Source: Macrostomum lignano
Taxonomy: Eukaryota
NCBI GenBank assembly: GCA_002269645.1
Contig: NIVC01000714.1
Location: 372,001 to 436,000, forward strand
DNA: 64,000 nt
Direction of reading: 5' to 3'
In this document: in pieces, positions 1 through 64,000 of the stretch
How the letters are laid out: each line of letters opens with the position of its first letter
How positions within the stretch are numbered: position 1 is the first letter of the stretch
Notes under the pieces: model-generated
What the model saw: only the letters and a program-made list of their open reading frames with translations
Databases searched by the model: none
What the model was told of the DNA's origin: nothing
Translations under genes and position numbers: made by a program

Positions 1-36
1 ACTAATAGACTATCACTCCCTAAAAACTGAATGCAG

Positions 37-502: not shown

Positions 503-564
503 GTGAGCGTGGGCATGACCCTTATTTGAAGCTTTTATAAAGTAATGCCCTCGATTGTCCTTTG

Positions 565-3500: not shown

Positions 3501-6500
3501 AGACCATGACCCTAATTTGGTGTTATTATGATGCCATGACCCTAATTTGGTGTCATTATGAATCCATGACCCTAATTTGGTGTCATTATGAGTCCCTAAT
3601 TTGGGGTTTTTATGAGACCATGACCCTAATTTGGTGTTATTATGAGGCCACGACCCTAATTTGGTGTCATTATGAATCCATGATCCTAATTTGGTATCAT
3701 TATGAGTCCCTAATTTGGTGTTCTTATGAGGCCATGACCCTAGTATGGTGTTATTATGAGGTCATGACCCTAGTTTGGTGTTATTATGAGACCATGACCC
3801 TAATTTGGTGTCATGAGGTCATGACCCTAATTTGGTGTTATTATGAGGCCATGACCCTAGTTTGGTGTTATTATGAGGCCATGACCCTAATTTGGTGTTA
3901 TTATGAGGCCATGACCCTAGTATGGTGTTATTATGAGACCATGACCCTAGTATGGTGGTATTATGAGACCATGACCCTACCCTAGTATGGTGGTATTATG
4001 AGACCATGACCCTAGTATGGTGTTATTATGAGACCATGACCCTAGTATGGTGCTATTATGAGGCCATGACCCTAATTTGGTGTTATTATGAGACCATGAC
4101 CCTAATTTGGTGTCATTATGAGGTCATGACCCTAATTTGGTGTTCTTATGAGACCATGACCCTAATTTGGTGTTATTATGAGGCCATGACCCTAATTTGG
4201 TGTCATTATGAATCCATGACCCTAATTTGGTGTCATTATGAGTCCCTAATTTGGTGTTTTTATGAGACCATGACCCTAATTTGGTGTTATTTTGAGGCCA
4301 CGACCCTAATTTGGTGTCATTATGAATCCATGATCCTAATTTGGTATCATTATGAGTCCCTAATTTGGTGTTCTTATGAGGCCATGACCCTAGTATGGTG
4401 TTATTATGAGGTAATGACCCTAGTTTGGTGTTATTATGAGACCATGACCCTAATTTGGTGTCATGAGGTCATGACCCTAATTTGGTGTTATTATGAGGCC
4501 ATGACCCTAGTTTGGTGTTATTATGAGGCCATGACCCTAATTTGGTGTTATTATGAGGCCATGACCCTAGTATGGTGTTATTATGAGACCATGACCCTAG
4601 TATGGTGGTATTATGAGACCATGACCCTACCCTAGTATGGTGGTATTATGAGACCATGACCCTAGTATGGTGTTATTATGAGACCATGACCCTAGTATGG
4701 TGCTATTATGAGGCCATGACCCTAATTTGGTGTTATTATGAGACCATGACCCTAATTTGGTGTCATGAGGTCATGACCCTAATTTGGTGTTTTTATGAGG
4801 CCATGACCCTAGTTTGGTGTCATTATAAATCCATGATCCTAATTTGGTGTCATTATGAGTCCCTAATTTGGTGTTCTTATGAGACCATGACCCTAGTATG
4901 GTGTTATTATGAGATCATGACCCTAATTTGGTGTTATTATGAGGCCATGACCCTAGTTTGGTGTCATTATGAGGCCATGACCCTAGTTTGGTGTCATTAT
5001 GAGGCCATGACCCTAGTTTGGTGTCATTATGAGACCATGACCCTAGTATGGTGGTATTATGAGATCATGACCCTAGTATGGTGTTATTTTGAGACCATGA
5101 CCCTAGTTTGGTGTCATTATGAGGCCATGACCCTAGTTTGGTGTCATTATGAGGCCATGACCCTAGTTTGGTGTCATTATGAGACCATGACCCTAGTATG
5201 GTGGTATTATGAGATCATGACCCTAGTATGGTGTTATTTTGAGACCATGACCCTAGTATGGTGCTATTATGAGGCCATGACCCTAGTATGGTGTTATTAT
5301 GAGGCCATGACCCTAGTTTGGTGTCATTATGAGGCCATGACCCTAGTTTGGTGTCATTATGAGGCCATGACCCTAGTTTGGTGTTATTCTGAGGCCATGA
5401 CCCTAATTTGGTGTTATTATGAGGCCATGACCCTAATTTGGTGTTATTATGAGGCCATGACCCTAGTTTGGTGTCATTATGAGGCCATGACCCTAGTTTG
5501 GTGTCATTATGAGGCCATGACCCTAGTATGGTGTTATTATGAGACCATGACCCTAGTATGGTGGTATTATGAGACCGTGACCCTACCCTAGTATGGTGGT
5601 ATTATGAGACCATGACCCTAGTATGGTGTTATTATGAGACCATGACCCTAGTATGGTGCTATTATGAGGCCATGACCCTAATTTGGTGTTATTATGAGAC
5701 CATGACCCTAATTTGGTGTCATGAGGTCATGACCCTAATTTGGTGTTTTTATGAGGCCATGACCCTAGTTTGGTGTCATTATAAATCCATGATCCTAATT
5801 TGGTGTCATTATGAGTCCCTAATTTGGTGTTCTTATGAGACCATGACCCTAGTATGGTGTTATTATGAGATCATGACCCTAATTTGGTGTTATTATGAGG
5901 CCATGACCCTAGTTTGGTGTCATTATGAGGCCATGACCCTAGTTTGGTGTCATTATGAGGCCATGACCCTAGTTTGGTGTCATTATGAGACCATGACCCT
6001 AGTATGGTGCTATTATGAGGCCATGACCCTAATTTGGTGTTATTATGAGACCATGACCCTAATTTGGTGTCATGAGGTCATGACCCTAATTTGGTGTTTT
6101 TATGAGGCCATGACCCTAGTTTGGTGTCATTATAAATCCATGATCCTAATTTGGTGTCATTATGAGTCCCTAATTTGGTGTTCTTATGAGACCATGACCC
6201 TAGTATGGTGTTATTATGAGATCATGACCCTAATTTGGTGTTATTATGAGGCCATGACCCTAGTTTGGTGTCATTATGAGGCCATGACCCTAGTTTGGTG
6301 TCATTATGAGGCCATGACCCTAGTTTGGTGTCATTATGAGACCATGACCCTAGTATGGTGGTATTATGAGATCATGACCCTAGTATGGTGTTATTTTGAG
6401 ACCATGACCCTAGTTTGGTGTCATTATGAGGCCATGACCCTAGTTTGGTGTCATTATGAGGCCATGACCCTAGTTTGGTGTCATTATGAGACCATGACCC

Positions 6501-8373
6501 TAGTATGGTGGTATTATGAGATCATGACCCTAGTATGGTGTTATTTTGAGACCATGACCCTAGTATGGTGCTATTATGAGGCCATGACCCTAGTATGGTG
6601 TTATTATGAGGCCATGACCCTAGTTTGGTGTCATTATGAGGCCATGACCCTAGTTTGGTGTCATTATGAGGCCATGACCCTAGTTTGGTGTTATTCTGAG
6701 GCCATGACCCTAATTTGGTGTTATTATGAGGCCATGACCCTAATTTGGTGTTATTATGAGGCCATGACCCTAGTTTGGTGTCATTATGAGGCCATGACCC
6801 TAGTTTGGTGTCATTATGAGGCCATGACCCTAGTATGGTGTTATTATGAGACCATGACCCTAGTATGGTGGTATTATGAGACCATGACCCTACCCTAGTA
6901 TGGTAGTATTATGAGACCATGACCCTAGTATGGTGTTATTATGAGACCATGACCCTAGTATGGTGCTATTATGAGGCCATGACCCTAATTTGGTGTTATT
7001 ATGAGACCATGACCCTAATTTGGTGTCATTATGAGGTCATGACCCTAATTTGGTGTTCTTATGAGACCATGACCCTAATTTGGTGTTATTATGAGGCCAT
7101 GACCCTAATTTGGTGTCATTATGAATCCATGACCCTAATTTGGTGTCATTATGAGTCCCTAATTTGGTGTTTTTATGAGACCATGACCCTAATTTGGTGT
7201 TATTATGAGGCCACGACCCTAATTTGGTGTCATTATGAATCCATGATCCTAATTTGGTATCATTATGAGTCCCTAATTTGGTGTTCTTATGAGGCCATGA
7301 CCCTAGTATGGTGTTATTATGAGGTAATGACCCTAGTTTGGTGTTATTATGAGACCATGACCCTAATTTGGTGTCATGAGGTCATGACCCTAATTTGGTG
7401 TTATTATGAGGCCATGACCCTAGTTTGGTGTTATTATGAGGCCATGACCCTAATTTGGTGTTATTATGAGGCCATGACCCTAGTATGGTGTTATTATGAG
7501 ACCATGACCCTAGTATGGTGGTATTATGAGACCATGACCCTACCCTAGTATGGTGGTATTATGAGACCATGACCCTAGTATGGTGTTATTATGAGACCAT
7601 GACCCTAGTATGGTGCTATTATGAGGCCATGACCCTAATTTGGTGTTATTATGAGACCATGACCCTAATTTGGTGTCATGAGGTCATGACCCTAATTTGG
7701 TGTTTTTATGAGGCCATGACCCTAGTTTGGTGTCATTATAAATCCATGATCCTAATTTGGTGTCATTATGAGTCCCTAATTTGGTGTTCTTATGAGACCA
7801 TGACCCTAGTATGGTGTTATTATGAGATCATGACCCTAATTTGGTGTTATTATGAGGCCATGACCCTAGTTTGGTGTCATTATGAGGCCATGACCCTAGT
7901 TTGGTGTCATTATGAGGCCATGACCCTAGTTTGGTGTCATTATGAGACCATGACCCTAGTATGGTGGTATTATGAGATCATGACCCTAGTATGGTGTTAT
8001 TTTGAGACCATGACCCTAGTTTGGTGTCATTATGAGGCCATGACCCTAGTATGGTGTTATTATGAGGTCATGACCATAGTTTGGTGTTATTATGAGACCA
8101 TGACCCTAATTTGGTGTCATGAGGTCATGACCCTAATTTGGTGTTATTATGAGGCCATGACCCTAGTTTGGTGTTATTATGAGGCCATGACCCTAGTTTG
8201 GTGTCAATTTGAGGCCATGACCCTAGTTTGGTGTCATTATGAGGCCATGACCCTAATTTGGTGTCATTATGAGGCCATGACCCTTGTTTGGTGTCATTAT
8301 GAGGCCATGACCCTAGTTTGGTGTCATTATGAGGCCATGACCCTAGTTTGGTGTTATTATGAGGTCATGACCC
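565..8373. repeat. 30-bp minisatellite (GAGGCCATGACCCTAATTTGGTGTCATTAT), about 260 copies, with higher-order blocks; TRPM intron
   Basis: Directly visible; explains the MTLIWCYYEA-type ORFs. Confidence 0.98.
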
Positions 8374-8588
8374 AACGTCGTGCTTTTCTTTGAGTCGTAA
8401 CCCGATTCCCGAATGTGCTGTTTTTTCTTGGGGTGGTGCGTTTTCTTGGGAAACACAGACCCGATTCACCCCGATAGGTCATGACCCGATTGAACTGCCT
8501 GGAAGTCGCAAATTCATAAATTATAACCAGTCGATGCAGATAAAGCAGTATTAATTACGGATTAATTAATTACACAATAATTGCCCAG

Positions 8589-18200: not shown

Positions 18201-19922
18201 TATTGACTAGATTAGCAATCCATTTTGGTTATTTAGTTATTGACTAGATTAGCAATCCATTTTGATTATTTAGTTATTGACTAGATTAGCAATCCATTTT
18301 GATTATTTAGTTATTGACTAGATTAGCAATCCATTTTGGTTATTTAGTTATTGACTAGATTAGCAATCCATTTTGATTATTTAGTTATTGACTAGATTAG
18401 CAATCCATTTTGGTTATTTAGTTATTGACTAGATTAGCAATCCATTTTGGTTATTTAGTTATTGACTAGATTAGCAATCCATTTTGATTATTTAGTTATT
18501 GACTAGATTAGCAATCCATTTTGATTATTTAGTTATTGACTAGATTAGCAATCCATTTTGTCTATTTAGTTATTGACTAGATTAGCAATACATTTTGCCT
18601 ATTTAGTTATTGACTAGACTAGCAATCCATTTAGATTATTTAGTTATTGACTAGATTAGCAATCCATTTTGATTATTTAGTTATTGACTAGATTAGCAAT
18701 CCATTTTGATTATTTAGTTATTGACTAGATTAGCAATCCATTTTGTTATTTAGTTATTGACTAGATTAGCAATCCATTTTGATTATTTAGTTATTGACTA
18801 GATTAGCAATCCATTTTGGTTATTTAGTTATTGACTAGATTAGCAATCCATTTTGATTTAGTTATTGACTAGATTAGCAATCCATTTTGATTATTTAGTT
18901 ATTGACTAGATTAGCAATCCATTTTGATTATTTAGTTATTGACTAGATTAGCAATCCATCTTTATTATTTAGTTATTGACTAGATTAGCAATCCATTTTG
19001 ATTATTTAGTTATTGACTAGATTAGCAATCCATTTTGATTATTTAGTTATTGACTAGATTAGCAATCCATTTTGATTATTTAGTTATTGACTAGATTAGC
19101 AATCCATTTTGCCTATTTAGTTATTGACTAGATTAGCAATCCATTTTGATTATTTAGTTATTGACTAGATTAGCAATCCATTTTGATTATTTAGTTATTG
19201 ACTAGATTAGCAATCCATCTTTATTATTTAGTTATTGACTAGATTAGCAATCCATTTTGCCTATTTAGTTATTGACTAGATTAGCAATCCATTTTGATTA
19301 TTTAGTTATTGACTAGATTAGCAATCCATTTTGCCTATTTAGTTATTGACTAGATTAGCAATCCATTTTGGTTATTTAGTTATTGACTAGATTAGCAATC
19401 CATTTTGCCTATTTAGTTATTGACTAGATTAGCAATCCATTTTGATTATTTAGTTATTGACTAGATTAGCAATCCATTTTGATTATTTAGTTATTGACTA
19501 GATTAGCAATCCATCTTTATTATTTAGTTATTGACTAGATTAGCAATCCATTTTGCCTATTTAGTTATTGACTAGATTAGCAATCCATTTTGATTATTTA
19601 GTTATTGACTAGATTAGCAATCCATTTTGATTATTTAGTTATTGACTAGATTAGCAATCCATCTTTATTATTTAGTTATTGACTAGACTAGCAATCCATT
19701 TAGATTATTTAGTTATTGACTAGATTAGCAATCCATTTAGATTATTTAGTTATTGACTAGACTAGCAATCCATTTAGATTATTTAGTTATTGACTAGATT
19801 AGCAATCCATTTAGATTATTTAGTTATTGACTAGATTAGCAATCCAGTTTGATTATTTAGTTATTGACTAGACTAGCAATCCAGTTTGATTATTTACTTA
19901 ACTGTTGACTAGACTAGCAATC
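15211..19922. repeat. 37-bp AT-rich minisatellite (GACTAGATTAGCAATCCATTTTGATTATTTAGTTATT), about 127 copies; TRPM intron
   Basis: Directly visible; variation concentrated in a short central patch of the unit. Confidence 0.98.
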
Positions 19923-19947
19923 CACCGAATCCCCGAAATCCATCCAG

Positions 19948-21170
19948 ACGAATTCCCGGACTCGAGCGGCATCGAGGACGCCCGGGTGATCACCTCGCTG
20001 AAGCTGTTCCTCCGGCCTGAGGAGGCGGCCGCCTTGCAGAGTTTTGAGTCGCAGTGCGTGCAGGACCTCCTGCTCATTCGGACTCGACTCGAACGTGGCC
20101 GCAGTCCCGGCCAGTTGTCCGAATTGTCCGACCGCCAGCTGACGGACAATGCAGCACCGCCGGCGCCAACGCCCGAAACTGCATCAGCGGCGGCAGCGGC
20201 AGCGGCGGCGGACGCGGCCACCCGCGTCAACGACCTGACGCAGCGACACCTTCTGGCAGCTGTGGAGCGACGAATCGCTGCCGCGGAGGCTGCCGCCGCA
20301 GCCGCGGCCGAAGCCGCCACCGCCGCTGCCGCTGCCGTAGCCATGGTTGTCGGCAGCTCCGAGCAGCAGCCGCCGCCGCAACCGCAGCCGCCGACGCCGC
20401 AGACGGGCCAGGACCAGCGTCAGTCTGCTCCACAGCACCAGCGACAGCCGAGCATCCGCCGACCGCTCAGGCAAGCCTCCTCGATTTCCGAGACTCCACA
20501 GCAGCTGTCCGCGGCCGAGGCAGCTCCGTTGAACATCCTGCTCGGTCTCCGGCCGCCTCCCGACTGCGGCTACACCAGCATCTGCGACGCTATCGACATC
20601 GGGCCGACTCTGGCCACCGCTGCTACCACCGACGCATCTGAGGTCTCCGTGGCTTCGCCGCCACGGCCGTCTCCGCTGCGACGACTGGACGCCACGTTGC
20701 GAGACGCCGAGGAGCGAGAGCGCTCCGTGCTGGGCAGCGCGCTGCGTCGAAGACTTCGCCAGTTCAGCATCACCGGCGAGTTGCCCGAAGGTGTCGGTGA
20801 AGGCGGCGCCGCCAATGACGCCGTTGGCGACGAAGCTGAGGATGGCGACGGCCGAGAGGGCGATGACGGTGACGCCGAGGAGGCCGATGAGAAGGCCTCG
20901 CTGCAGGACATCATGGAGGTGGCCCTCGAACGTCTCGTTGACGCCGAGTTGCGCGACTGCGGCGTAGACCAGCTACAGCAGCTTCGGCTGCAGGAGTTCG
21001 ACGACGAGGACGACGATGACGGCGGAGTTGGAGACGAAGGCGGCTACGAGGACGCCATGGCGATGATGGCGGCCGGCGGCGGCCCGAGCGGCTTCGACTT
21101 AAGCGGCGATCCGGCGGCCCGCCCGTCCATGGCCGTCCCAGATGAGACGGATGAGGAGACTGGGGTGTGA
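19948..21170 (+). CDS. TRPM: TRPM channel terminal exon (C-terminal helix/coiled coil and low-complexity tail)
   Basis: catccag| acceptor in phase 1. SLKLFLRPEEAAALQSFESQCV resembles TRPM LKLFL..E...LHDFEEQC. Stop TGA at 21168-21170; no kinase or NUDT9-H domain seen. Confidence 0.88.
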
Positions 21171-23920: not shown

Positions 23921-23965
23921 CCCGATTTGTCATTGTCTTCGAACTCGAACAACTCATGCGCTGCC

Positions 23966-24649
23966 ATGACTCAGTCCGCGTCCAACATTGTCGCCTCGTT
24001 GCGCTCAACTTTCGCCACCGGTTGCACCCGATCGCTGGACTGGCGCCGCAGCCAGCTCAAGGCCATGCACAACATGCTCAGCGAGCAGGAGGCCCGATTC
24101 CTTGAAGCTCTGTGGCGCGACCTGCGAAAGAGCAAGCAGGAGACCGCCGCGACAGAGCTGCTCATGGTCAAAGGCGAGATCGCCAAGCTGTCCAAGGAGC
24201 TGACGCATCTGGCCGCTCCTACTAAACCGCCGAAGACGTTCATCAGCCGGATGGACGGCCTGGCCATTCAACCGCAGCCGCTGGGAGTCGCCCTGATCAT
24301 CGGTGCCTGGAACTACCCGATCCAGCTGGTCCTGCTGCCACTGGCCGGAGCCATCGCCGCTGGCAACTGCGCCGTGGTGAAGCCGTCAGAGATTGCCGAA
24401 GCCTCGGCTGCTCTGCTAGCCGAGCTGCTGCCAAAATATCTCGACCAGGACTGCGTCCGTGTGGTGTGCGGCGGCGTCGAGGAGACCCAGCAGCTGCTTG
24501 AGCAGCGATTCGACACCATCTTCTACACTGGCAGCTCCCGGGTTGCCCGCATTGTGATGGCCGCGGCCAGCAAGCATCTGACTCCGGTCACCCTCGAGCT
24601 GGGCGGCAAGTCGCCCGTCTACGTGTCTCACGGTATCGATTTGGAACTG
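23966..24649 (+). CDS. ALDH3: ALDH3-family aldehyde dehydrogenase, exon 1 of 2
   Basis: gccATG start. Motifs PLGVALIIGAWNYP, IAAGNCAVVKPSE, YTGSSRVA and LELGGKSP; |gtgagt donor, phase 0. Confidence 0.95.
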
Positions 24650-25243: not shown

Positions 25244-26005
25244 GTGTCGCGCCGGCTGGCCTGGGGCAAGTTCATGAACGCCGGGCAGACGTGTATCGCC
25301 CCGGACTACGTGCTGTGCCCGCCCGACCTGATGCAGCCGCTGGCCGACGCCCTGGCCGCCAGGGTTATCGAATTCTTCGGCGAAAATCCGCGGGACAGCC
25401 CAGACTATGGCCGGATCGTGTCCGACCGGATGTTCGACCGACTGTCCGGCCTGCTGTCCGAGACCAAAGCCAAGCGAGTCGTCGGCGGCGACCCGGACAA
25501 AGCCGAGCGGTTCATCCCGCCCACCGTCTTCGTGGACGTGAAGCCGGACGACGCCCTGATGCGCGAGGAGCTGTTCGGCCCCATCCTGCCCATCCTGCCG
25601 GTCCGCGGCGGCGTCGACGAAGCCATCGAGCTGATCAACGCCGGGGAGAAGCCGCTGGCTCTCTACGCCTTCACCAACGATGCCAGCGTTCGCCGACGCT
25701 TCGAAGAGTCAACCAGCAGCGGCGCCCTGGTGTTTAACGACGTCGTCATTCATGCCGGCATCGACACGCTGCCGTTTGGCGGCGTCGGCGAGTCCGGCAT
25801 GGGCTGCTACCACGGCGTGTACACCTTCCAGGCGTTCTCGCATCGTCGCTCGGTGCTGTACAAGAACGCCAGCGCGATCTCCGAGGCTGTCAACTCTCGC
25901 TTCCGCTATCCGCCGTACAACGAATCTAAACTGGGCTGGATCAGCTGGGCTCTGAGCAGCAGCGTTAGCGACAAGGGCGGCTGGAATTCCTGCCAGCTGC
26001 TTTGA
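25244..26005 (+). CDS. ALDH3: ALDH3-family aldehyde dehydrogenase, exon 2 of 2 (catalytic Cys; C-terminal CQLL)
   Basis: cccgcag| acceptor. Motifs WGKFMNAGQTCIAPDY, EELFGPILP, EKPLALYAF, LPFGGVGESGMGCYHG and RYPPY. Confidence 0.95.
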   Translation: MSRRLAWGKFMNAGQTCIAPDYVLCPPDLMQPLADALAARVIEFFGENPRDSPDYGRIVSDRMFDRLSGLLSETKAKRVVGGDPDKAERFIPPTVFVDVKPDDALMREELFGPILPILPVRGGVDEAIELINAGEKPLALYAFTNDASVRRRFEESTSSGALVFNDVVIHAGIDTLPFGGVGESGMGCYHGVYTFQAFSHRRSVLYKNASAISEAVNSRFRYPPYNESKLGWISWALSSSVSDKGGWNSCQLL

Positions 26006-32552: not shown

Positions 32553-35412
32553 CAGGTGTGTCACCTGTTAGATATGGGGTGTCACCTGTTAGATATGGGT
32601 GTCACCTGTTAGATATGAGTGTCACCTGTTAGATATGGGTGTCACCTGTTAGATATGGGTGTCACCTGTTAGATATGAGTGTCACCTGTTAGATATGGGT
32701 GTCACCTGTTAGATATGGGTGTCACCTGTTAGATATGGGTGTCACCTGTTAGATATGGGTGTCACCTATTTGATATAGGTCTCAACTGTTAGATATGGGT
32801 GCCACCTGTTAGATATGGGTGTCACCTGTTAGATATGGTTGTCACCTGTTAGATATGGGTGTCATCTGTTAGATATGGGTGTCACCTGTTAGATATGGGT
32901 GTCACCTGTTAGATATGGGTGTCACCTGTTAGATATGGGTGTCACCTGTTAGATATGGGTGTCACCTATTTGATATAGGTCTCAACTGTTAGATATGGGT
33001 GCCACCTGTTGGATATGGGTGTCACCTGTTAGATATGGTTGTCACCTGTTAGATATGGGTGTCATCTGTTAGATATGCGTGCCGCCTGTTAGATATGGGT
33101 GTCACCTGTTAGATATGGGTGTCACCTGTTAGATATGAGTGTCACCTGTTAGATATGGGTGTCACCTGTTAGATATGGGTGTCACCTGTTTCATATAGGT
33201 CTCAACTGTTAGATATGGGTGTCACCTGTTAGATATGGGTGCCACCTGTTAGATATGGTTGTCACCTGTTAGATATGGGTGTCATCTGTTAGATATGCGT
33301 GCCGCCTGTTAGATATGGGTGTCACCTGTTAGATATGGGTGTCACCTATTTGATATAGGTCTCAACTGTTAGATATGGGTGCCACCTGTTAGATATGGGT
33401 GTCACCTGTTAGATATGGTTGTCACCTGTTAGATATGGGTGTCATCTGTTAGATATGGGTGTCACCTGTTAGATATGGGTGTCACCTGTTAGATATGGGT
33501 GTCACCTGTTAGATATGGGTGTCACCTGTTAGATATGAGTGTCACCTGTTAGATATGGGTGTCACCTGTTAGATATGGGTGTCACCTGTTAGATATGGGT
33601 GTCACCTGTTAGATATGGGTGTCACCTATTTGATATAGGTCTCAACTGTTAGATATGGGTGCCACCTGTTAGATATGGGTGTCACCTGTTAGATATGGTT
33701 GTCACCTGTTAGATATGGTTGTCACCTGTTAGATATGGGTGTCACCTGTTAGATATGGGTGTCACCTGTTAGATATGGGTGTCACCTGTTAGATATGGGT
33801 ATCACCTGTTAGATATGGGTGTCACCTGTTTGATATAGGTCTCAACTGTTAGATATGGGTGCCACCTGTTAGATATGGGTGTCACCTGTTAGATATGGGT
33901 GTCACCTGTTAGATATGGGTGTCATCTGTTAGATATGCGTGCCGCCTGTTAGATATGGGTGTCACCTGTTAGATATGGGTGTCACCTGTTAGATATGGGT
34001 GTCACCTGTTAGATATGGGTGTCACCTGTTAGATATGGGTGTCACCTGTTTGATATAGGTCTCAACTGTTAGATATGGGTGTCACCTGTTAGATATGGGT
34101 GCCACCTGTTAGATATGGTTGTCACCTGTTAGATATGGGTGTCATCTGTTAGATATGCGTGCCGCCTGTTAGATATGGGTGTCACCTGTTAGATATGGGT
34201 GTCACCTGTAAGATACGAGTGTCACCTGTTAGATATGGGTGCCGCCTGTTAGATATGGGTGTCACCTGTTAGATATGCGTGCCGCCTGTTAGATATGGGT
34301 GTCACCTGTTAGATATGGGTGTCACCTGTTAGATATGGGTGTCACCTGTTATATATGGGTGTCACCTGTTAGATATGGGTGTCACCTGTTAGATATGGGT
34401 GTCACCTGTTAGATATGGGTGTCACCTGTTTGATATAGGTCTCAACTGTTAGATATGGGTGCCACCTGTTAGATATGGGTGCCACCTGTTAGATATGGTT
34501 GTCACCTGTTAGATATGGGTGTCATCTGTTAGATATGCGTGCCGCCTGTTAGATATGGGTGTCACCTGTTAGATATGGGTGTCACCTGTTAGATATGGGT
34601 GTCACCTGTTAGATATGGGTGTCACCTGTTAGATATGGGTGCCATCTGTTAGATATGGTTGTCACCTGTTAGATATGGGTGTCACCTGTTAGATATGGGT
34701 GTCACCTGTTAGATATGAGTGTCACCTGTTAGATATGGGTGCCGCCTGTTAGATATGGGTGTCACCTGTTAGATATGGGTGTCACCTGTTAGATATGGGT
34801 GTCACTAGACATGGGTGTCACCTGTTAGATATGGGTGTCACCTGTTAGATATGGGGTGTCACTAGATATGGGTGTCACCTGTTAGATATGGGTGTGACCT
34901 GTTAGATATGGGTGTCACCTGTTAGATATGGGTGTCACCTGTTAGATATAGGTCTCAACTGTTAGATATGGGTGTCACCTGTTAGATATGGGTGTCACCT
35001 GTTAGATATGGGTGTCACCTGTTAGATATGGGTGTCACCTGTTAGATATGGGTGTCACCTGTTTGATATAGGTCTCAACTGTTAGATATGGGTGTCACCT
35101 GTTTGATATGGGTGTCACCTGTTAGATATAGGTGTCACCTGTTATATATGGGTGTCACCTGTTAGACAGAAGTGTCACCTGTTAGACAGAAGTGTCACCT
35201 GTTAGACAGGAGTGTCACCTGTTAGACAGGAGTGTCACCTGTCACCTGTTATAGACAGAAGTGTCACCTGTTAGACAGGAGTGTCACCTGTTAGACAGGA
35301 GTGTCACCTGTTAGACAGAAGTGTCACCTGTTAGACAGAAGTGTCACCTGTTAGACAGAAGTGTCACCTGTTAGATATGGGTGTCACCTGTTAGATAGGA
35401 GTGTCACCTGTT
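32553..35412. repeat. 20-bp minisatellite (GTCACCTGTTAGATATGGGT), about 140 copies; the family recurs at 57513 and 62195
   Basis: Directly visible. Confidence 0.98.
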
Positions 35413-46956: not shown

Positions 46957-47231
46957 TTAATAGAGGCTGGTCTTCTTCATAATCCTCAGGAACTCGGACT
47001 CGTTAATCTCTCCGTCTCCGTCCCTGTCCGCTTCGTCGATCATCTCCTGCAGCTCCTCGTCAGTGAGGTTCTCGCCGAGTTCTTTGGCGACTCGTTTCAA
47101 ATTTTTGAACGAAATTTTCCCTGTTTCATCGTCGTCAAATAAGCGGAAGGCCTTCAGAATTTCTTCTTTGGAGTCTTTCTCGGTCATTTTGCTGGTCATC
47201 ATGCTGAGAAAGTCGTTAAAGTCAATGCTGC
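46957..47231 (-). CDS. CETN: Centrin (caltractin) exon 2
   Basis: [64 protein letters not shown], a centrin-1/2 signature; ctcccgcag| acceptor. Confidence 0.97.
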
Positions 47232-47237
47232 CTGCGG

Positions 47238-47485
<248 letters not shown>

Positions 47486-50337: not shown

Positions 50338-51192
50338 ATGCAGCTCGCACTGATGCAAGTATCTTCAGCTATCCTGCTATGCAGCCTGATGGTCCACTGC
50401 TGCATCGCCGACACCAACTCTGCACCTAAAAGTCTGTCATCTGCCGCTGCCAATGGCCAGCCTCGAGCCCAGCGCTCCGACGAGCTGGTAGTGAAGCTGG
50501 ACTGTCAGCCAGCCCTCGCCGGACAGCCAGTTGCCTACCGGATCGAATTCCGTCAGACATCCGACTGCACCAATGCTGCCACGATCACCATGACCGGGAC
50601 CAGACAGGACCGATTCGATTCCCTTGGCGCCGCGCCTGTCTCAGCTGCAACCTGGTGGCTGTTCCGGCTTGGCGAGCTGCCTCAACAGGCTGGCACAGAG
50701 CCCAGCCTGCCGCTCCTCACTGTTAAAATGATGCCAAACTGTTCCGGACTGACTGTCAAGCCGTTGAAATCAACAGCCGGTATTGGAGACTATGCTGTGC
50801 TGGCTGACGCATCCGGCTGCTCCATAGTCAGAGTGCTCACTCTGCTGCCTAAGCTGCTCAGCAACACTCGCGGCCGCTGTCTGCTGTATGGCATACAGGG
50901 CGCTAACAGTGTTGGAGATGTTGAATCTGGCGATGCAGCCGATATGTGCATCCTGATCCAGGAGCACGGGTACAGCAACCGGCGCAGTCTGTTTGGCGAG
51001 CTGCGGGCCGATAACAGGACATGCTCGGCTGCCGCTTCCGCCAGTGTTGGCAATGGGGACAGCTTCATCAATCGGGTCTCGGTAGTGTTCGTGTCCGTGT
51101 CCTTTGTCCTGCTGGTGGCCATCAGCGTGTCATGGATTGTGTTCTACTATGTGCAGCGGTTTCGTTACAGGCACGCTAAGAAGAGGCTCTCG
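50338..51192 (+). CDS. Goliath/GRAIL-type (RNF130/149/150 family) E3 ligase exon 1: signal peptide, lumenal PA-like region, TM helix
   Basis: N-terminal hydrophobic signal; NRVSVVFVSVSFVLLVAISVSWIVFYYVQRFRYRHAK is a goliath-family TM signature; |gtgaga donor. Confidence 0.88.
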
Positions 51193-51269
51193 GTGAGAAA
51201 GCATTGCTGCTGTTTTGGGCTGGTGATGGCCTCTCAAATTTGTCTTGATGATTGATTGGCATTGCAGCC

Positions 51270-53394: not shown

Positions 53395-53444
53395 TTGACT
53401 GACTGACTGACTGGCTGACTGACTGACTGACTGACTGGCTGACT

Positions 53445-53495
<51 letters not shown>

Positions 53496-55075
53496 TGACT
53501 GGCTGACTGACTGACTGACTGACTGACTGACTGACTGACTGACTGACTGACTTAAGTGAGTGGGTGACTGACTGACTGACTGACTTAAGTGAGTGGGTGA
53601 CTGACTGACTTAAGTGAGTGGGTGACTGACTGACTGACTGACTGACTTGAGTAAGTGGGTGACTAACTGACTGACTGACTGACTAACTGACTGACTGACT
53701 GACTGCCTGACTGCCTGACTGCCTGACTGCCTGACTGCCTGACTGACTGCCTGACTGACTGACTGCCTGACTGCCTGACTGACTGCCTGACTGACTGACT
53801 GACTGACTGACTGACTGCCTGACTGACTGCCTGACTGCCTGACTGACTGACTGACTGACTGACTGGCTGACTGCCTGACTGACTGACTGACTGACTGACT
53901 GACTGACTGACTGACTGACTTAAGTGAGTGGGTGACTGACTGACTGACTGACTGACTTGAGTAAGTGGGTGACTAACTGACTGACTGACTGACTGACTGA
54001 CTGACTGACTGGCTGGCTGGCTGACTGCCTGACTGACTGACTGACAGACTGACTGACGGACTGCCTGACTGCCTGACTGCCTGACTGACTGCCTGACTGA
54101 CTGACTGACTGACTGCCTGACTGCCTGACTGACTGCCTGACTGACTGCCTGACTGACTGACTGACTGACTGACTGACTGCCTGACTGCCTGACTGACTGC
54201 CTGACTGCCTGACTGACTGACTGACTGACTAACTGACTGACTGACTGACTAACTGACTGACTGACTGACTGACTGACTGCCTGACTGACTGACTGACTGT
54301 GACTTAAGTGAGTGGGTGACTGACTGACTGACTGACTGACTTGAGTAAGTGGGTGACTGACTGACTGACTGACTGACTGACTGACTGACTGACTGGCTGG
54401 CTGGCTGGCTGACTGCCTGACTGACTGACTGACTGACTGACTGACTGACTGCCTGACTGCCTGACTGACTGCCTGACTGACTGACTGACTAACTGACTGA
54501 CTGACTGACTGACTGACTGCCTGACTGACTGACTGACTGACTGACTTAAGTGAGTGGGTGACTGACTGACTGACTGACTGACTTGAGTAAGTGGGTGACT
54601 GACTGACTGACTGACTGACTGACTGACTGACTGACTGACTGGCTGGCTGGCTGGCTGACTGCCTGACTGACTGACTGACGGACTGACTGACGGACTGACT
54701 GACGGACTGACTGACTGCCTGACTGCCTGACTGACTGACTGACTGACTGACTGCCTGACTGACTGACTGACTGACTGACTGACTGACTGACTGACTGACT
54801 GACTGACTGCCTGACTGCCTGACTGCCTGACTGACTAACTGACTGACTGACTGACTGACTGACTGACTAACTGACTGACTGACTGACTGCCTGATTGACT
54901 GACTGACTAACTGACTGACTGACTGACTGACTGCCTGACTGACTGACTGCCTGACTGACTGATTGACTGCCTGCCTGACTGCCTGTCTTACTGACTGACT
55001 GACTGCCTGCCTGACTGGCTGACTGAGTGACTGACTGACTGACTGACTGACTGACTTGAGTGAGTGGGTGACTGA
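53395..55075. repeat. (CTGA)n microsatellite with recurrent CTTAAGTGAGTGGGT interruptions; RING-ligase intron
   Basis: Directly visible. Confidence 0.97.
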
Positions 55076-56175: not shown

Positions 56176-56258
56176 GAGTTGCAGTGGATTGGCGACCACT
56201 GCGCTGTGTGCATCGAGCCCTACGGCTGCGGCGACCCGGTCAGAATTTTGCCGTGCAA
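56176..56258 (+). CDS. Goliath-type RING ligase exon 3 (RING-H2 N-half)
   Basis: catcgcag| and |gtgagt; DHCAVCIEPYGCGDPVRILPCK. Confidence 0.9.
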
Positions 56259-56329: not shown

Positions 56330-57035
56330 AGTGAGTGCCCAGAATCCACTATTCAAATAGGAGTGCTTAGAATTCCCTAGACAATTAGGAGTGCCCAGGA
56401 TACACTATATAAAAAAGGAGTGCTCATAATTTTCCAGAAAAATAGGAGTGCCCAGAATTCCCCTATAGAAATAGGAGTGCCCAGAATTCCCCTATAGAAA
56501 TAGGAGTGCCCAGAATTCCCCTATAGAAATAGGAGTGCCCAGAATTCCCCTATAGAAATAGGAGTGCCCAGAATTCCCCTAAAGAAATAGGAGTGCCCAG
56601 AATTCCCCTATACAAATAGAAGTGCCCAGAATTCTCCTATACTCGTAGAAATAGGAGTGCCCAGAATTCCCCTATACAAATAGAAGTGCCCAGAATTCTC
56701 CTATACTCGTAGAAATAGGAGTGCCCAGAATTCCCCTATACAAATAGAAGTGCCCAGAATTCTCCTATAGAAATAGGAGTGCCCAGAATTCCCCTATACA
56801 AATAGAAGTGCCCAGAATTCTCCTATACTCGTAGAAATAGGAGTGCCCAGAATTCCCCTATACAAATAGAAGTGCCCAGAATTCTCCTATAGAAATAGGA
56901 GTGCCCAGAATTCCCCTATACAAATAGAAGTGCCCAGAATTCTCCTATAGAAATAGGAGTGCCCAGAATTCCCCTATAGAAATAAGAGTACCCAGAATCC
57001 CACTCCCTGTAGGAAATGAACGGAGTGCCCAGAAT
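56330..57035. repeat. 29-bp minisatellite (AGAAATAGGAGTGCCCAGAATTCCCCTAT); intron splitting the RING domain
   Basis: Directly visible. Confidence 0.94.
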
Positions 57036-57105
57036 TGCACAAATGCATAAAACGAGTGCCAAAACGGAGTGGCTGCAGAGCTTACCCCCCAAAACTAACC
57101 GCCAG

Positions 57106-57418
57106 GCACAAGTACCACACGCACTGCATCGACCAGTGGCTGCTGGACCAGCGCTCCTGCCCTCTGTGCAAAACTGACATCCTGAAAGCCTGCGGTCTAT
57201 GGGTCAGCGGCGGCTCCCGGATCTCCCTGGATGACGTCACCATCACGCCGGCCGCCTCCCAGCAGCCTCCGTCCATTGGCATCGCCTCCACCGGCGCCTC
57301 CGCCGGCGCCACCGCTGCCGCCGCTAATCGCAACAATAATAATAATAATAGTAATAATAATTACCACCGTCATTCGGGAGGCTGCGTGCTACATCATCAT
57401 CCGCCTGATAGCGAGAAT
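57106..57418 (+). CDS. Goliath-type RING ligase exon 4 (RING-H2 C-half)
   Basis: ccgccag| and |gtaagt; [28 protein letters not shown]. Confidence 0.9.
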
Positions 57419-57512
57419 GTAAGTGACACTTTTTTGAAAGAACGATTTTTGTAAAAATTCACCTTTTATAAATATAGTGTTATGCGTTAGACAGATGAAA
57501 CCTAGCTGGTGG

Positions 57513-58379
57513 TGTTAGATATGGGTGTCACCTATTAGATATGGGTGTCACCTGTTAGATATGGGTGTCACCTGTTAGATATGGGTGTCACCTGTTAGAT
57601 ATGGGTGTCACCTGTTAGATATGGGTGTCACCTGTTAGATATGGGTGTCACCTGTTAGATATGGGTGTCACCTGTTAGATATGGGTGTCACCTGTTAGAT
57701 ATGGGTGTCACCTGTTAGATATGGGTGTCACCTATTAGATATGGGTGTCACCTGTTAGATATGGGTGTCACCTGTTAGATATGGGTGTCACCTGTTAGAT
57801 ATGGGTGTCATCTGTTAGATATGGGTGTCACCTGTTAGATATGGGTGTCACCTGTTAGATATGGGTGACACCTGTTAGATATGGGTGTCACCTGTTAGAT
57901 ATGAGTGTCACCTGTTAGATATGGGTGTTCACCTGTTAGATATGGGTGTCGCCTGTTAGATATGGGTGTCACCTGTTAGATATGGGTGTCACCTGTTAGA
58001 TATGGGTGTCACCTGTTAGATATGGGTGTCACCTGTTAGATATGGGTTTCACCTGTTAGATATGGGTGTCACCTGTTAGATATGGGTGTCACCTGTTAGA
58101 TATGGGTGTCACCTGTTAGATATGGGTGTCACCTGTTAGATATGGGTGTCACCTGTTAGATATGGGTGTCACCTGTTAGATATGGGTGTCACCTGTTAGA
58201 TATGGGTGTCACCTGTTAGATATGGGTGTCACCTGTTAGATATGGGTGTCACCTGTTAGATATGGGTGTCACCTGTTAGATATGGGTGTCACCTGTTAGA
58301 TATGGGTGTCACCTGTTAGATATGGGTGTCACCTGTTAGATATGGGTGTCACCTGTTAGATATGGGTGCCGCCTGTTAG
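57513..58379. repeat. 20-bp minisatellite, same family as 32553..35412
   Basis: Identical consensus GTCACCTGTTAGATATGGGT. Confidence 0.97.
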
Positions 58380-58438
58380 CAGAAGTGACCTGACAACGGC
58401 TGAAATCGCAACACAAAAATCAACAATCATTATGCCAG

Positions 58439-58507
58439 CAGCTGGCAGTGGAGAGCGACCCACCGGAGAACCCGACCGGTGCCGACCCCCTGCTGAGTGG
58501 AGTCTGA
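58439..58507 (+). CDS. Goliath-type RING ligase, tentative terminal exon (QLAVESDPPENPTGADPLLSGV*)
   Basis: The only phase-0-compatible acceptor I found after the 20-bp array (tatgccag|, NAGNAG). GC-rich, but no homology support. Confidence 0.45.
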   Translation, partial: QLAVESDPPENPTGADPLLSGV

Positions 58508-58946
58508 CCCGATCTTCTCAATTCCTTCATCAGGATTACAAGTTGAACTAAAAGCGCCATTGGAATTTGAAACGTTTAGGCAAAAGTCTAAAAAAGTTTT
58601 AACCAGTCCAATGCGCGAACTGGAAAAACGGTGGCTATTAAGCTTTTTCGAGACAAATTTCTGAAAGTCTGGCCATCATTGTTGTTCCAATATCGATTTT
58701 TGATTCGCGTTCATTTTTGAAAAAAGTAATTATTGTTTCTTAGCAACGGAAAAGGAGAGTCGTTGGTCAAACTTGTTTGTTTTTGACGGTTTTTTCTCAA
58801 TAAAAAATTCTTTTCTAACAAATCATCGTTGAGTTATTAGCTACTTCTGTGTAAGTAGTAACAGCAGAAAAAATGCGTATTTTTGTTCAAACATGTTTTT
58901 GTCATATCAATCAATTTGCGTGTATTAATTAATTAATCAACTTCAT

Positions 58947-58986
<40 letters not shown>

Positions 58987-59339
58987 CAGCTTCCCTGCTA
59001 CATTTCTCTAGTCATTTGTTTCTGCGTTTTCTTCATCAATCAACACCTTCAACTAATTTGCTTGAAACTGTTTTCTGTTTGTCTATTTTATCAATAAATC
59101 AAGTACAATCATATCAGCATGCGTTTCTATCATAGCTGGCTTGTGCTTCTGCAACTTTTATAGTCAATCTGAGGGTCTAATTAGTTTGTATAACGCCTAG
59201 CGCACTACCTACCGTATTCATAGAGTTGAATAATTATGTTTTGGGCAGTGCACATTCCGCAATATTGACTGGTCTGTCGAAACATTTTCAGCGCTAATTA
59301 TTTGTAAATTTTGTGATTGTTGACATTTTTATTGCTTTC

Positions 59340-60085
59340 AGAATGGCTACTAAACTACCCTCAGAATGGCCACTAAACTGCCATCAGAATGGCCACTAAA
59401 CTGCCATCAGAATGGCCACTAAACTGCCATCAGAATGGCCACTAAACTGCCCTCAGAATGGCCACTAAACTGCCCTCAGAATGGCCACTAAACTGCCCTC
59501 AGAATGGCCACTAAACTGCCCTCAGAATGGCCACTAAACTGCCCTCAGAATGGCCACTAAACTGCCCTCAGAATGGCCACTAAACTGCCCTCAGAATGGC
59601 CACTAAACTGCCCTCAGAATGGCCACTAAACTGCCCTCAGAATGGCCACTAAACTGCCCTCAGAATGGCGACTAAACTGCCCTCAGAATGGCCACTAAAC
59701 TGCCCTCAGAATGGCGACTAAACTGCCCTCAGAATGGCGACTAAACTACCCTCAGAATGGCCACTAAACTGCCCTCAGAATGGCCACTAAACTGCCCTCA
59801 GAATGGCCACTAAACTGCCCTCAGAATTGCCACTAAACTGCCCTCAGAATGGCCACTAAACTGCCCTCAGAATAGCCACTAAACTGCCCTCAGAATGGCG
59901 ACTAAACTGCCCTCAGAATGGCCACTAAACTGCCCTCAGAATGGCGACTAAACTGCCCTCAGAATGGCCACTAAACTGCCCTCAGAATGGCCACTAAACT
60001 GCCCTCAGAATGGCGACTAAACTACCCTCAGAATGGCCACTAAACTGCCCTCAGAACGGCCACTAAACTGCCCTCAGAATTGCCA
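59340..60085. repeat. 23-bp minisatellite (GAATGGCCACTAAACTGCCCTCA)
   Basis: Directly visible. Confidence 0.96.
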
Positions 60086-60534
60086 GTATAAACTAGATAA
60101 ATGCCACTCATTTTTAATTTCACCATTTAAAAAAACAAAAATGTATGGTAGTAACCCTAGTCTGCTCGAACTAACGTCAATTAGATTTTTAGTAATCGTT
60201 TTGCGTTTATTTTGATGCATTGACATTATTATTGTGTTACTTTCAGTAGCAAGCACAGGTTTGTAGAACCAATTTTTATTGACTAATACAGACTAATAAA
60301 CAGCATGCGTCACAGGTTAAACAGTTGCACGGTTCAAGTGAATAGTGCAGCACACTTATACTCCTTGTTGTATCAATCGCTTCTCATCATATTGCTCCTT
60401 TTAGAAATTAGTATAAGCAGAAAATATACAAATTGAAATGTCATTGTTTTCTTTTCTTTTATTGTTAAACTAGCGTTGATAATTTTGTGTTGACTTCGTT
60501 TCTTAATAATTTTCTCAGTTGAGAGGCGTTGTTG

Positions 60535-61657
60535 CAGATCGGGATGGATTATTGCATATTGGGATGGATTATTGCATATTGGGAAGGGTTGTTGCAGATT
60601 GGGAAGGGTTGTTGCAGATTGGGAAGGGTTGTTGCAGATTGGGAAGGGTTGTTGCAGATTGGGAAGGGTTGTTGCAGATTGGGAAGGGTTGTTGCGAATT
60701 GGGAAGGGTTGTTGCAGATTGGGAAGGGTTGCTGCGGATTGGGAAGTGTTGTTGCAGATTGGGAAGGGTTGTTGCGAATTGGGAAGGGTTGTTGCAGATT
60801 GGGAAGGGTTGCTGCGGATTGGGAAGTGTTGTTGCAGATTGGGAAGGGTTGTTGCGAATTGGGAAGGGTTGTTGCAGATTGGGAAGGGTTGCTGCGGATT
60901 GGGAAGTGTTGTTGCAGATTGGGAAGGGTTGTTGCGAATTGGGAAGGGTTGTTGCAGATTGGGAAGGGTTGCTGCGGATTGGGAAGGGTTGTTGCAGATT
61001 GGGAAGGGTTGTTGCGAATTGGGAAGGGTTGTTGCAGATTGGGAAGGGTTGCTGCGGATTGGGAAGGGTTGCTGCGGATTGGGAAGGGTTGTTGCAGATT
61101 GGGAAGGGTTGTTGCGAATTGGGAAGGGTTGTTGCAGATTGGGAAGGGTTGCTGCGAATTGGGAAGGGTTGATGCAGATTGGGAAGGGTTGCTGCGGATT
61201 GGGAAGGGTTGTTGCAGATTGGGAAGGGTTGCTGCGGATTGGGAAGGGTTGTTGCAGATTGGGAAGGGTTGTTGCAGATTGGGAAGGGTTGTTGCAGATT
61301 GGAAAGGGTTGTTGCAGATTGAGAAGGGTTGTTGCAGATTGGAAAGGGTTGTTGCAGATTGAGAAGGGTTGTTGCAGATTGGGAAGGGTTGTTGCAGATT
61401 GGGGATGCTTGTTGCACATTGGGAAGGGTTGTTGCAGATTGGGAAGGGTTGTTGCAGATTGGGAAGGGTTGTTGCAGATTGGAAAGGGTTGTTGCAGATT
61501 GAGAAGGGTTGTTGCAGATTGGAAAGGGTTGTTGCAGATTGAGAAGGGTTGTTGCAGATTGGGAAGGGTTGTTGCAGATTGGGGATGGTTGTTGCACATT
61601 GGGAAGGGTTGTTGCAGATTGGGAAGGGTTGTTGCAGATTGGGAAGGGTTGTTGCAG
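60535..61657. repeat. 20-bp G-rich minisatellite (GGGAAGGGTTGTTGCAGATT), about 55 copies
   Basis: Directly visible. Confidence 0.97.
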
Positions 61658-62194
61658 AAATTTAGAATCAAATAAAAGTTTGAAAGGCAATGTATAAAAT
61701 ACGTACAAACTGTAGTTTTTTTAAATTAACACAAAAATATTTTATAGCATTGAATGAACCAAGTACGCTCGTACATTGAAAAGCACTTTAACAGATTCAG
61801 ATTAACAGGTAATTGCAGATTTATCTCAAAAATATCTGCAAATAGTGCACTTGAAAAAATGCTACATTAAAAAATTGATTCGGCAACTGCTGTAATTTTA
61901 GGCAATTCATTTGTGTACAGATCTGATGGCGCAATCCCCTGAAAAACAAACGAAATATTTTTTATCGATTTTTATTCTGCAAATTTACTGATAAAAACAA
62001 TTAATGATTGTAGACGAGCCATAATGCCTAACAGATTTTTATGTTAGCAAAGTTTTAAATAACAGTATGAGTGTCGTTGGAAGATAAAAAATAGGAATTT
62101 TGATTGTTTACAGACAAACTGGTTTCATGCAATTTGTGACACTTGTGAGTTGTGAATGCACTATATACATGTATATATAACATACTGTATGACA

Positions 62195-62575
62195 GCATAT
62201 CTTACAGGCGGCACCCGTATCTAACAGGTGACACCCATATCTAACAGGTGACTCACCATATCTAACAGGTAACAGCCATATCTAACAGGTGACACTCATA
62301 TCTAACAGGTAACGCTCATATCTAACAGGTGACACCCACATCTAACAGGTAACACTCATATCTAACAGGTTACAGCCATATCTAACAGGTGACACCCATA
62401 TCTAACAGGTAACACTCATATCTAACAGGTGACAGCCATATCTAACAGGTAACACCCCATATCTAACAGGTAACACCCCATATCTAACAGGTGACAGCCA
62501 TATCTAACAGGTAACACCCCATATCTAACAGGTAACACCCCATATCTAACAGGTATCAGCTATATCTAGCAGGTT
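62195..62575 (-). repeat. 20-bp minisatellite family (GTCACCTGTTAGATATGGGT) in reverse orientation, more degenerate
   Basis: + strand ATATCTAACAGGTGACACCC is the reverse complement of the family consensus. Confidence 0.92.
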
Positions 62576-62612
62576 ACGAACATGTGACACCTCAGAGCAC
62601 CACACCGGAGTC

Positions 62613-63581
62613 TCAGGCCGGGTTGAGCAGGCAGATGGCGAGAATCTCAGCTCCGCAGACGGGACAGTCAGCAGCCTGGGCCTCGCAGGCCGGGCAGAGG
62701 CTGCGGTGGCTGCAGGGCAGCAGGCAGCAGGCCGCCTCCCCGCAGCCGCACAGCCGGCAGCGCAGTCGAGCGGTCCACGATGGCACCGAAGCCGCGGCCA
62801 GCTGGCGCTTCTTCTGGGCGGCGGCCAGCCAGTCCTCGGCCAGGGCGGCCACCCGGCCGATCCCGCAGTCGTCGGCCCGTTTGCGAAGCTCCATCGCAGT
62901 CTCCAGCTGCAGTTCGCCGCTGGCAAAATCGTCTCCGCAGAAAGCGAGCTGCAGCCTGATGGCCGCCTCGGCGTCCTGCGGATGATCGGCGATGTCGGCA
63001 AGTCGGGCGGCCAGCTGGGCGGCCGGCAGGTCGGCGCGAGCCCGCGGGCTGCGCCTGTCGACGCGGAAGAGCAGCGCCGCTGTCGCCAGCGTCGAGCCGC
63101 GGAGGAGCCGCCGACGTTGCGGCGTTGCGTCAATGAGCTGGCCGCCGCCGCCGCCGCTGCCGCAAATATCGACGGGGCTGTCATTGTCGGCGCCGACGAT
63201 TCTCAAGGTCGGAAAGTTGGCCTCGGCGACGGCGCTGACGAACGCCGAGCCGCGTTCGCGCAGCAGGTGCGGGCATGTCGGCGACAGGCGGGCGTGCAGC
63301 AGCCAGGGGCAGGGCGGCTGTCAGGCGACGTTGGAGGCCACCGACCAGGCCAGGACGGCGCTCGGTGGAAAAGCGACGCCGCAAGCGTAGCAACGGCAGG
63401 CAGCTGTCGACAACGGCTTGTCGTTGGCGGCGTCGACAACGTGGAAGCCGGACTTGGCGGCCAGCCAATCAGAAGCCAGGCCGCGGCACCAGGCGCTGGA
63501 CTGCAGGCTGGCCTGCCGACTGACTGTGCGAGCAGCGACCAGCGGCGGCAGGCAGCTGGCGGCGGCGGATTCGCTGGGCAT
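62613..63581 (-). CDS. Inhibitor-of-apoptosis (IAP)-like BIR-UBA-RING protein, interrupted by in-frame TGA at 63321-63323 (micro-intron, readthrough or pseudogene)
   Basis: Track ORFs 63321..63581 and 62613..63206 share one frame. BIR elements: LAAKSGF, CYAC, PWLLHARLSPTCPHLLRERGSAFV. UBA-like AIRLQLAFCGDDFASGE. C-terminal C3HC4 RING CRLC..LPCSHRSLCPAC..CPVC. Acceptor ctccgcag| lies 6 nt before the ATG. Confidence 0.78.
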
Positions 63582-63601
63582 CGAAAACTGCGGAGAATTG
63601 C

Positions 63602-64000
63602 GGCAGATTTGTTTAGTGTCAGTGGCAGATTGGTGAAGTGTCGGTGGCAGATTTGTTTAGTGTCAGTGGCAGATTTGTTTAGTGTCGGTGGCAGATTTGT
63701 TTAGTGTCGGTGGCAGATTTGTTTAGTGTCGGTGACAGATTTGTTTAGTGTCGGTGGCAGATTGGTGAAGTATCGGTGGCAGATTAGTTTAGTGTCGGTG
63801 GCAGATTTGTTTAGTGTCAGTGGCAGATTTGTTTAGTGTCGGTGGCAGATTTGTTTAGTGTCGGTGGCAGATTTGTTTAGTGTCGGTGGCAGATTTGTTT
63901 AGTGTCGGTGGCAGATTTGTTTAGTGTTGGTGGCAGATTTGTTTAGTGTCGGTGGCAGATTGGTGAAGTATCGGTGGCAGATTAGTTTAGTGTCGGTGGC
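63602..64000. repeat. 22-bp minisatellite (GGCAGATTTGTTTAGTGTCGGT), runs off the window end
   Basis: Directly visible. Confidence 0.95.

Follow-up and report, generated by a model that had tools for sequence, protein, structure and literature searches.

Among the closest described relatives of the gene reported here are the canonical IAPs with two BIRs and a RING, represented by vertebrate cIAP1 and XIAP, in which the modules follow one another as BIR3-UBA-RING, and by the Macrostomum lignano proteins PAA61298.1, PAA89740.1, and PAA49083.1. Searching the literature for IAP genes of Macrostomum turned up nothing specific to them. The copy number of genes in this animal should be noted. M. lignano is a hidden polyploid that has undergone a recent whole-genome duplication, the sequenced line carries extra large chromosomes, and the assembly contains 180 Mb of non-repetitive duplicated blocks at identities of at least 95% (PMC5730564; PMC10468722). 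For many genes, two to four near-identical copies are kept. With such redundancy, a nonsense mutation that hits one of the copies is an expected and ordinary outcome. The splicing habits of the animal are also described. Flatworms, including M. lignano, have microintrons, with a peak at ~37 nt in trematodes, and the splice sites of these microintrons are reported to be nearer to the consensus than those of other introns (PMC6530080). The donor motif of the species, GT[G/A]AG, was found in 122,399 of 187,627 junction regions, and its acceptor is CAG (PMC8629364). The deposited gene models of M. lignano are derived from a genome-guided RNA-seq assembly (PMC5730564).

The window (the whole 64,000-nt stretch of M. 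lignano DNA analyzed here) contains GC-rich exons between very large minisatellite arrays, and a divergent IAP-like gene enters it at its far end on the minus strand (Table 1). Two minus-strand ORFs had originally been described there as one frame split only by a TGA in the context GCC TGA CAG, and re-reading of the sequence confirmed this description. The frame from the ATG at 63581 to the normal stop comprises 322 codons with that single internal TGA. The CYAC and HARLSPTC motifs occupy residues 64–67 and 96–103, respectively, which leaves a spacer of 28 codons with the stop counted, and the RING, with all of its eight ligands, is complete, both as stated in the original prediction. The ATG at 63581 is not the start of the gene. 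The acceptor CAG of intron 3 is located at 63590–63588, and exon 4 begins at 63587 with TTT TCG ATG, encoding F, S, and M, in agreement with the junction between ECS and FSMPSES in the annotated sister proteins described below. When these proteins were mapped onto their loci, the parent gene proved to consist of four coding exons encoding ~645 amino acids with two BIRs. Exons 1–3 of the window copy lie past the end of the window. Deletion of the 39-nt segment proposed as an intron does leave 309 codons and a 15-residue spacer, as had been calculated, but the resulting 309-aa protein is not a gene product, because the ATG at 63581 is internal and the window holds only exon 4.

Table 1 Features of the IAP-like locus and its neighbors, in window coordinates
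Feature	Position	Strand	Remarks
Intron 3, 3' end	63588–64000	minus	22-nt minisatellite at 63602–64000; ends in the acceptor CCGCAG
Coding exon 4 (last) of the divergent IAP-like gene	62613–63587	minus	encodes BIR2, UBA-like helical block, and RING
BIR2-like domain	63228–63518	minus	CxxC at 63381–63392; Hx6C at 63273–63296
Lineage-specific blocks of extra residues in BIR2	~63363–63377, 63324–63335, 63306–63314	minus	
Candidate 39-nt intron of the original prediction	63318–63356	minus	read here as coding, VLAWSVASNVA*Q, with the invariant BIR Trp
Premature TGA	63321–63323	minus	GGA (Gly) in both sister copies; alignment column 318
UBA-like helical block (ARADLP...GDDFASGELQLETAMEL)	62886–63041	minus	aligns with LGFS...GDDFATSELFLD of the paralogues
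RING, IAP type (zf-C3HC4_3), C-terminal	62655–62759	minus	PDB matches to cIAP1, cIAP2, and XIAP RINGs; 3' of the premature stop
Normal stop TGA	62615–62613	minus	within exon 4
20-nt minisatellite	62196–62574		directly downstream of the IAP-like exon; common to the sister loci
RING-H2 gene	exons ending at 56258 and spanning 57106–57454		downstream neighbor of the IAP-like gene
Centrin, last exon	46957–47231	minus	EF-hand pair
ALDH3-like gene	23927–24649, 25244–26005	plus	two very large exons

The assignment of the frame to the IAPs, with BIR, UBA-like, and RING modules, is upheld by phmmer, by matches in the PDB, and by the predicted fold. The frame matches IAP paralogues of M. lignano with phmmer E-values of 4e-14 to 4e-11 over residues ~62–320, and by Pfam these paralogues are genuine IAPs with two BIRs and a RING and with the canonical Cx2Cx16Hx6C signature. 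In the PDB, the frame is matched by the BIR3 and RING domains of cIAP1, XIAP, and ML-IAP. The cIAP1 entry 3t6p is matched in two stretches (E 9e-5), and the same entry is also found by Foldseek with the AF2 model of a sister copy. The eight RING ligands show IAP spacing, with E-values of 0.005–0.06 against IAP RINGs in the PDB. The four zinc ligands and the Trp of the BIR signature are present in the frame, with a spacer of 28 instead of 16, and the stop of the window copy falls between the CxxC and the H/C ligands. A word-indexed protein search with the frame translated through the stop as X gave no match; M. lignano proteins seem to be left out of that search.

The AF2 model of the intact sister protein, which is driven by a 69-sequence alignment and does not represent the truncated product of the window copy, contains confident BIR1, BIR2, helical UBA-like, and RING modules. 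In this model, the pLDDT of BIR2 is 63–94, and BIR2 is superimposed by Foldseek on BIR3 of cIAP1 and XIAP with target-normalized TM-scores of 0.75–0.80. Prediction of the sister protein from its single sequence was uninformative (pLDDT 39). The helical block between BIR2 and the RING, with AF2 helices of pLDDT 79–94, was undetected by Pfam; we label it UBA-like on the presumption of its similarity to the UBA domains of cIAP and XIAP.

The gene shares with the canonical IAPs the domain order, the motifs HARxSPxCxHLLxERGxxFV, ARADLP, and GDDFAxxEL, and the eight-ligand RING. It differs from them in that both its BIRs and its RING score below the curated Pfam cutoffs, the Cys-to-His spacer of BIR2 is expanded, and the acidic DD(P)W motif is replaced. 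Pfam found no BIR in any of five versions of the translation (both halves, the readthrough with X, and two spliced forms). Scoring of spliced against readthrough translations by Pfam, which had been proposed as a check, thus cannot separate the hypotheses, since neither is matched. With the curated cutoff of 22.9 bits for PF00653, only BIR1 of the intact sister copy (P0121) gives a score, 19.6 bits, and its BIR2 is undetected, whereas five paralogues (P0122, P0124, P0125, P0126, and P0128) reach 39–94 bits, above the cutoff. The RING of the window frame scores 23–25 bits with zf-C3HC4_3, against a cutoff of 27. The gene lineage is a markedly divergent IAP, and the family call is right.

The positions of the surplus residues in BIR2 should be noted. 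The count of 12 extra residues in the spacer given in the original prediction is correct, but the residues do not form one contiguous block. They are distributed over two or three small blocks, ~VAFPP, SNVA, and PCP, flanking the invariant BIR Trp (codon 63345–63347). The blocks appear in a 6-sequence alignment, in which two human BIR3 sequences may be inexact, and in the 69-sequence alignment; the finding that the insertion is split rests on the latter together with the PDB searches. Among the first 15 rows of the 69-sequence alignment, which were inspected, the insertions are absent from the other family members. Against solved BIRs, the unspliced fragment scores 19 bits through its C-terminal half only, and the form lacking the proposed 39 nt scores 22 bits. 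Removal of the three blocks guided by the alignment raises the score to 33–36 bits, and the zinc core is then matched over its whole length without a gap. In the AF2 model of the sister copy, SNVA is the sole stretch of BIR2 with pLDDT below 50, and it lies immediately before the Gly or stop codon. This model suggests that the site of the TGA is in a poorly modeled, probably loop-like insertion.

The closest protein to the window frame was found by phmmer among 1.84 billion representative proteins. M. lignano PAA60512.1 (BOX15_Mlig022603g1) matches with an E-value of 3e-200 and 98% identity, and its residues 324–645, of 645 in total, cover all 322 codons. Its 90% cluster includes PAA59522.1 (BOX15_Mlig008071g1, 649 aa) and three partial models from the ML2 assembly. 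Both proteins are annotated as hypothetical protein/RING-type domain-containing protein. Both read ...SVASNVAGQPPCPW..., with Gly at the position of the stop and with the 13 codons of the proposed intron kept, and their extra BIR2 loop residues are identical to those of the window copy. By exact look-ups, the 86-aa and 197-aa ORFs and the 93-aa ORF beginning with ATG are not on record in the protein collection.

The sister loci, L001 (NIVC01002144.1) and L002 (NIVC01002256.1) of assembly GCA_002269645.1, are collinear with the window from 55.5 to 64 kb, and the 22-nt intron minisatellite, the 20-nt downstream minisatellite, and the neighboring RING-H2 gene are common to all three. The introns of L001 are 146, 1567, and 774 nt long, with donors GTGTGT, GTGGGC, and GTGAGG and with CAG acceptors. 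The ML2 models P0218 and P0220 run from exon 3 into the 22-nt repeat of intron 3. A processed retrocopy or a viral origin, considered for the apparently intronless and GC-rich coding region, was rejected when mapping of the sister loci revealed further exons, and introns, upstream.

The exon 4 DNA of the window is 99.1% identical to the PAA60512.1 copy and 97.9% identical to the PAA59522.1 copy. In a three-way DNA alignment, nine of the 975 nt of the exon are private to the window copy: one nonsense change, which places TGA for GGA at exon codon 89, five missense changes (63212 S>P, 63158 G>S, 63101 C>R, 62993 V>I, and 62777 R>W), and three silent ones. The private bases include C at 63212 and T at 63170. 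The six non-silent and three silent changes give a pN/pS of 0.72 (binomial p 0.71 against neutrality), a value from small numbers, since nine substitutions are too few to separate neutrality from moderate constraint. No indel is found between the window and L001 in exon 4. The length of the poly-Gly (GGC)n tract (63140–63160 on the minus strand of the window; ~9620–9640 in L002) varies among the copies; L002 has 12 additional nt there, and the G>S change of the window copy lies inside the tract.

Solving the three pairwise distances places all nine exon changes on the window branch (0.92%), against 0.42% on the same branch in a 958-nt flank. The intact copies L001 and L002 differ from each other at only two of 1935 exon nt, neither of them silent. 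In unique flanks, the window is nearest to L001 (0–0.9%), and L002 is 4–5% off. This near-identity of the L001 and L002 exons points to gene conversion involving the duplicated chromosomes, or to unusually strong constraint acting on silent sites as well. The divergence is mosaic over the regions compared (L001 6001–10422, L002 6001–10183, and window 57000–59337), with the flanks pairing the window with L001. In the ML2 assembly, which is older and independent, a third and more diverged copy of exons 1–3 is found (P0219, A0A1I8IS39); over 321 residues, it departs from PAA60512.1 at 11 amino acids. As a guess, A0A1I8IS39 may be the upstream part of the disrupted copy in the window.

Compared with the two intact and collinear copies, L001 and L002, the window copy carries one disabling lesion, the change of GGA to TGA. 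The change is a single G-to-T transversion, the sole transversion among the nine differences. Recent pseudogenization had been listed among the alternatives in the original prediction, and it is now the favored explanation, as the sisters carry Gly, the loci are collinear, and the substitutions are private to the window copy. We estimate a probability of about 0.74 that the window copy is a young pseudogene or a null copy or allele, representing the ordinary loss of a redundant duplicate. The locus resembles described cases of duplicate loss by nonsense mutation after whole-genome duplication in that one of at least three copies has a stop and an excess of private changes. It differs from them in that the window copy has only one disabling lesion, with everything 3' of the stop, including the RING and all other motifs, intact. 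The disruption would have to be very recent, or the copy still used somehow, because the RING and the downstream motifs are intact. Instead of a fixed pseudogene, the copy may represent a null allele that still segregates.

Three points are inferred: the presence of the T in the animal itself, the loss of function of the copy, and the following consequences of the truncation. One G-to-T change would have converted a glycine codon within the lineage-specific loop of BIR2 into a stop, and translation would end after ~409 residues if exons 1–3 are intact. The truncated product would retain BIR1 and a BIR2 without its His and Cys ligands, and would lack the UBA-like block and the RING. Since a stop in the last exon would escape exon-junction-dependent mRNA decay, such a product might be made. 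With two copies still intact, we expect the loss to be almost neutral, and the effect on the animal is probably negligible.

The competing explanations differ in whether the stop is spliced out, misread by the sequencing, or read through by the ribosome. The original prediction placed it in a micro-intron, possibly a regulated poison intron, and the broader form of this reading is that 39 nt or 24 nt (63318–63341) are partly spliced out as a micro-intron or exitron, rescuing the full-length protein, possibly in a regulated manner. The candidate is like the flatworm microintrons (PMC6530080) and exitrons in its GT..AG ends, in its length, which is a multiple of three and close to the trematode peak, and in an acceptable acceptor CAG; its removal also slightly improves the similarity to solved BIRs, as described above. 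However, in-frame GT..AG brackets of 18–75 nt can be drawn by chance around 181 of 274 exon codons (66%), and brackets of 18–45 nt around 32%. The donor, correctly called non-consensus at the outset, is GTCCTG preceded by C and departs from the motif of the species. GT[AG]AG is found nowhere in exon 4, and CTGAC, the one good branch-like motif, stops 2 nt short of the AG. The eight introns mapped (seven distinct, one from a near-identical duplicate locus) are 146–1567 nt long, with G as the third donor base in six and A in one. The RNA-seq-guided models of both sisters keep the segment, and its position is not conserved as an intron: the paralogues P0122, P0125, and P0126, in which a single exon spans BIR2 to RING, have no intron between the CxxC and the His. 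In a collection of 15 billion protein sequences, no isoform lacking the 13 or 8 codons was found for the window copy or the sisters. Splicing would, moreover, damage the domain, removing the invariant Trp and leaving a spacer of 15 residues. We take the 39 nt to be coding rather than intronic, and partial splicing of either segment is very unlikely.

An assembly or base-call error is the main rival to the loss of a redundant copy. The animal would have GGA here too, and the T would be an artefact of consensus building or polishing, for example from mis-assigned reads. Both of the other copies have G, the stop is the sole transversion, and polishing is error-prone in a genome so redundant and repeat-rich (PMC5730564). 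Cross-copy mis-polishing, on the other hand, would import G, and no known copy has T. The eight other clean substitutions mark a distinct haplotype or copy, the 975 nt contain no indels, although indels are the usual error of long reads, and the neighboring exons of ALDH3, centrin, and RING-H2 in the window are open and undamaged. We regard such an error as unlikely, though the most serious of the alternatives. Translational recoding, in which readthrough of UGA-C or insertion of selenocysteine yields a functional full-length protein, is the least probable of all. In favor of recoding, no stop context known in animals is leakier than UGA followed by C, and the frame beyond the stop is undamaged and retains every RING ligand. 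The stop is, however, not conserved, and a sense codon in both sisters is the signature of a mutation rather than of programmed recoding; the homologous position is occupied by Gly instead of Cys, and the gene normally terminates at a TGA in all three copies. Selenocysteine was rejected for the latter two reasons and for the lack of a SECIS: an Rfam scan of 60000–64000 at E ≤ 1 found neither a SECIS nor any other Rfam element. That the TGA copy is alive, through a weak exitron (39 or 24 nt, ending in the CAG at 63318) or UGA-C readthrough in some transcripts, is hardly more credible than recoding. If true, it would provide a low and possibly regulated dose of a BIR2-variant IAP together with a truncated product containing BIR1 only.

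Under the preferred reading, the loss of a redundant duplicate, the significance is small beyond annotation, and nonsense loss of a redundant copy is of a kind already known. The exon should be recorded as the final one of a third, disrupted copy of an IAP-like gene that is already annotated in M. lignano; annotation as a stand-alone 309-aa gene with a micro-intron is unwarranted. As a clear instance of the ongoing loss of a gene copy in a hidden polyploid, the locus is relevant to the design of knock-outs in M. lignano, for which functional copies must be counted. An IAP lineage with sub-threshold BIR and RING domains, and with expanded BIR2 loops at the peptide-binding groove, may interest researchers of flatworm cell death.

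The introns of the neighboring genes are canonical, with GTGAGT donors, (C)GCAG or CCAG acceptors, and lengths of 594 and 847 nt. The ALDH3-like intron (594 nt, GTGAGT..GCAG) consists of nearly nothing other than 11-nt repeats of the CCTGACCCAAC type. The relatives found for the ALDH3 exons by the word-indexed search, with the apparent omission of M. lignano proteins noted above, have at most 54% identity (best ~52–54%). Two long GC-rich ORFs on the plus strand gave no match in Pfam. One of them (19905–21170, 421 aa) is rich in Ala, Asp, and Glu, and the other (50338–51255, 305 aa) has, by eye, hydrophobic stretches at its N-terminus, where a signal peptide is possible, and at its C-terminus. 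The two ORFs probably represent exons of genes specific to the lineage.

Several of the arrays in the window imitate or approach coding regions. The 7.8-kb array at 565–8373, with ~263 copies of a 30-nt unit, gives rise to a chain of spurious ATG ORFs (31–8393, plus strand), because the unit is a multiple of three. The (TGAC)n array of ~1.7 kb at 53396–55075 yields a fake 486-aa ORF of SVSQ repeats on the minus strand. The 20-nt unit (GTGTCACCTGTTAGATATGG or its complement) recurs in three arrays tens of kb apart (32558–35412, 57513–58379, and 62196–62574), and arrays of this unit are also present in the sister loci at different copy numbers. A run of ~82 AGT units at 47239–47484 reaches within 8 nt of the start of the centrin exon.
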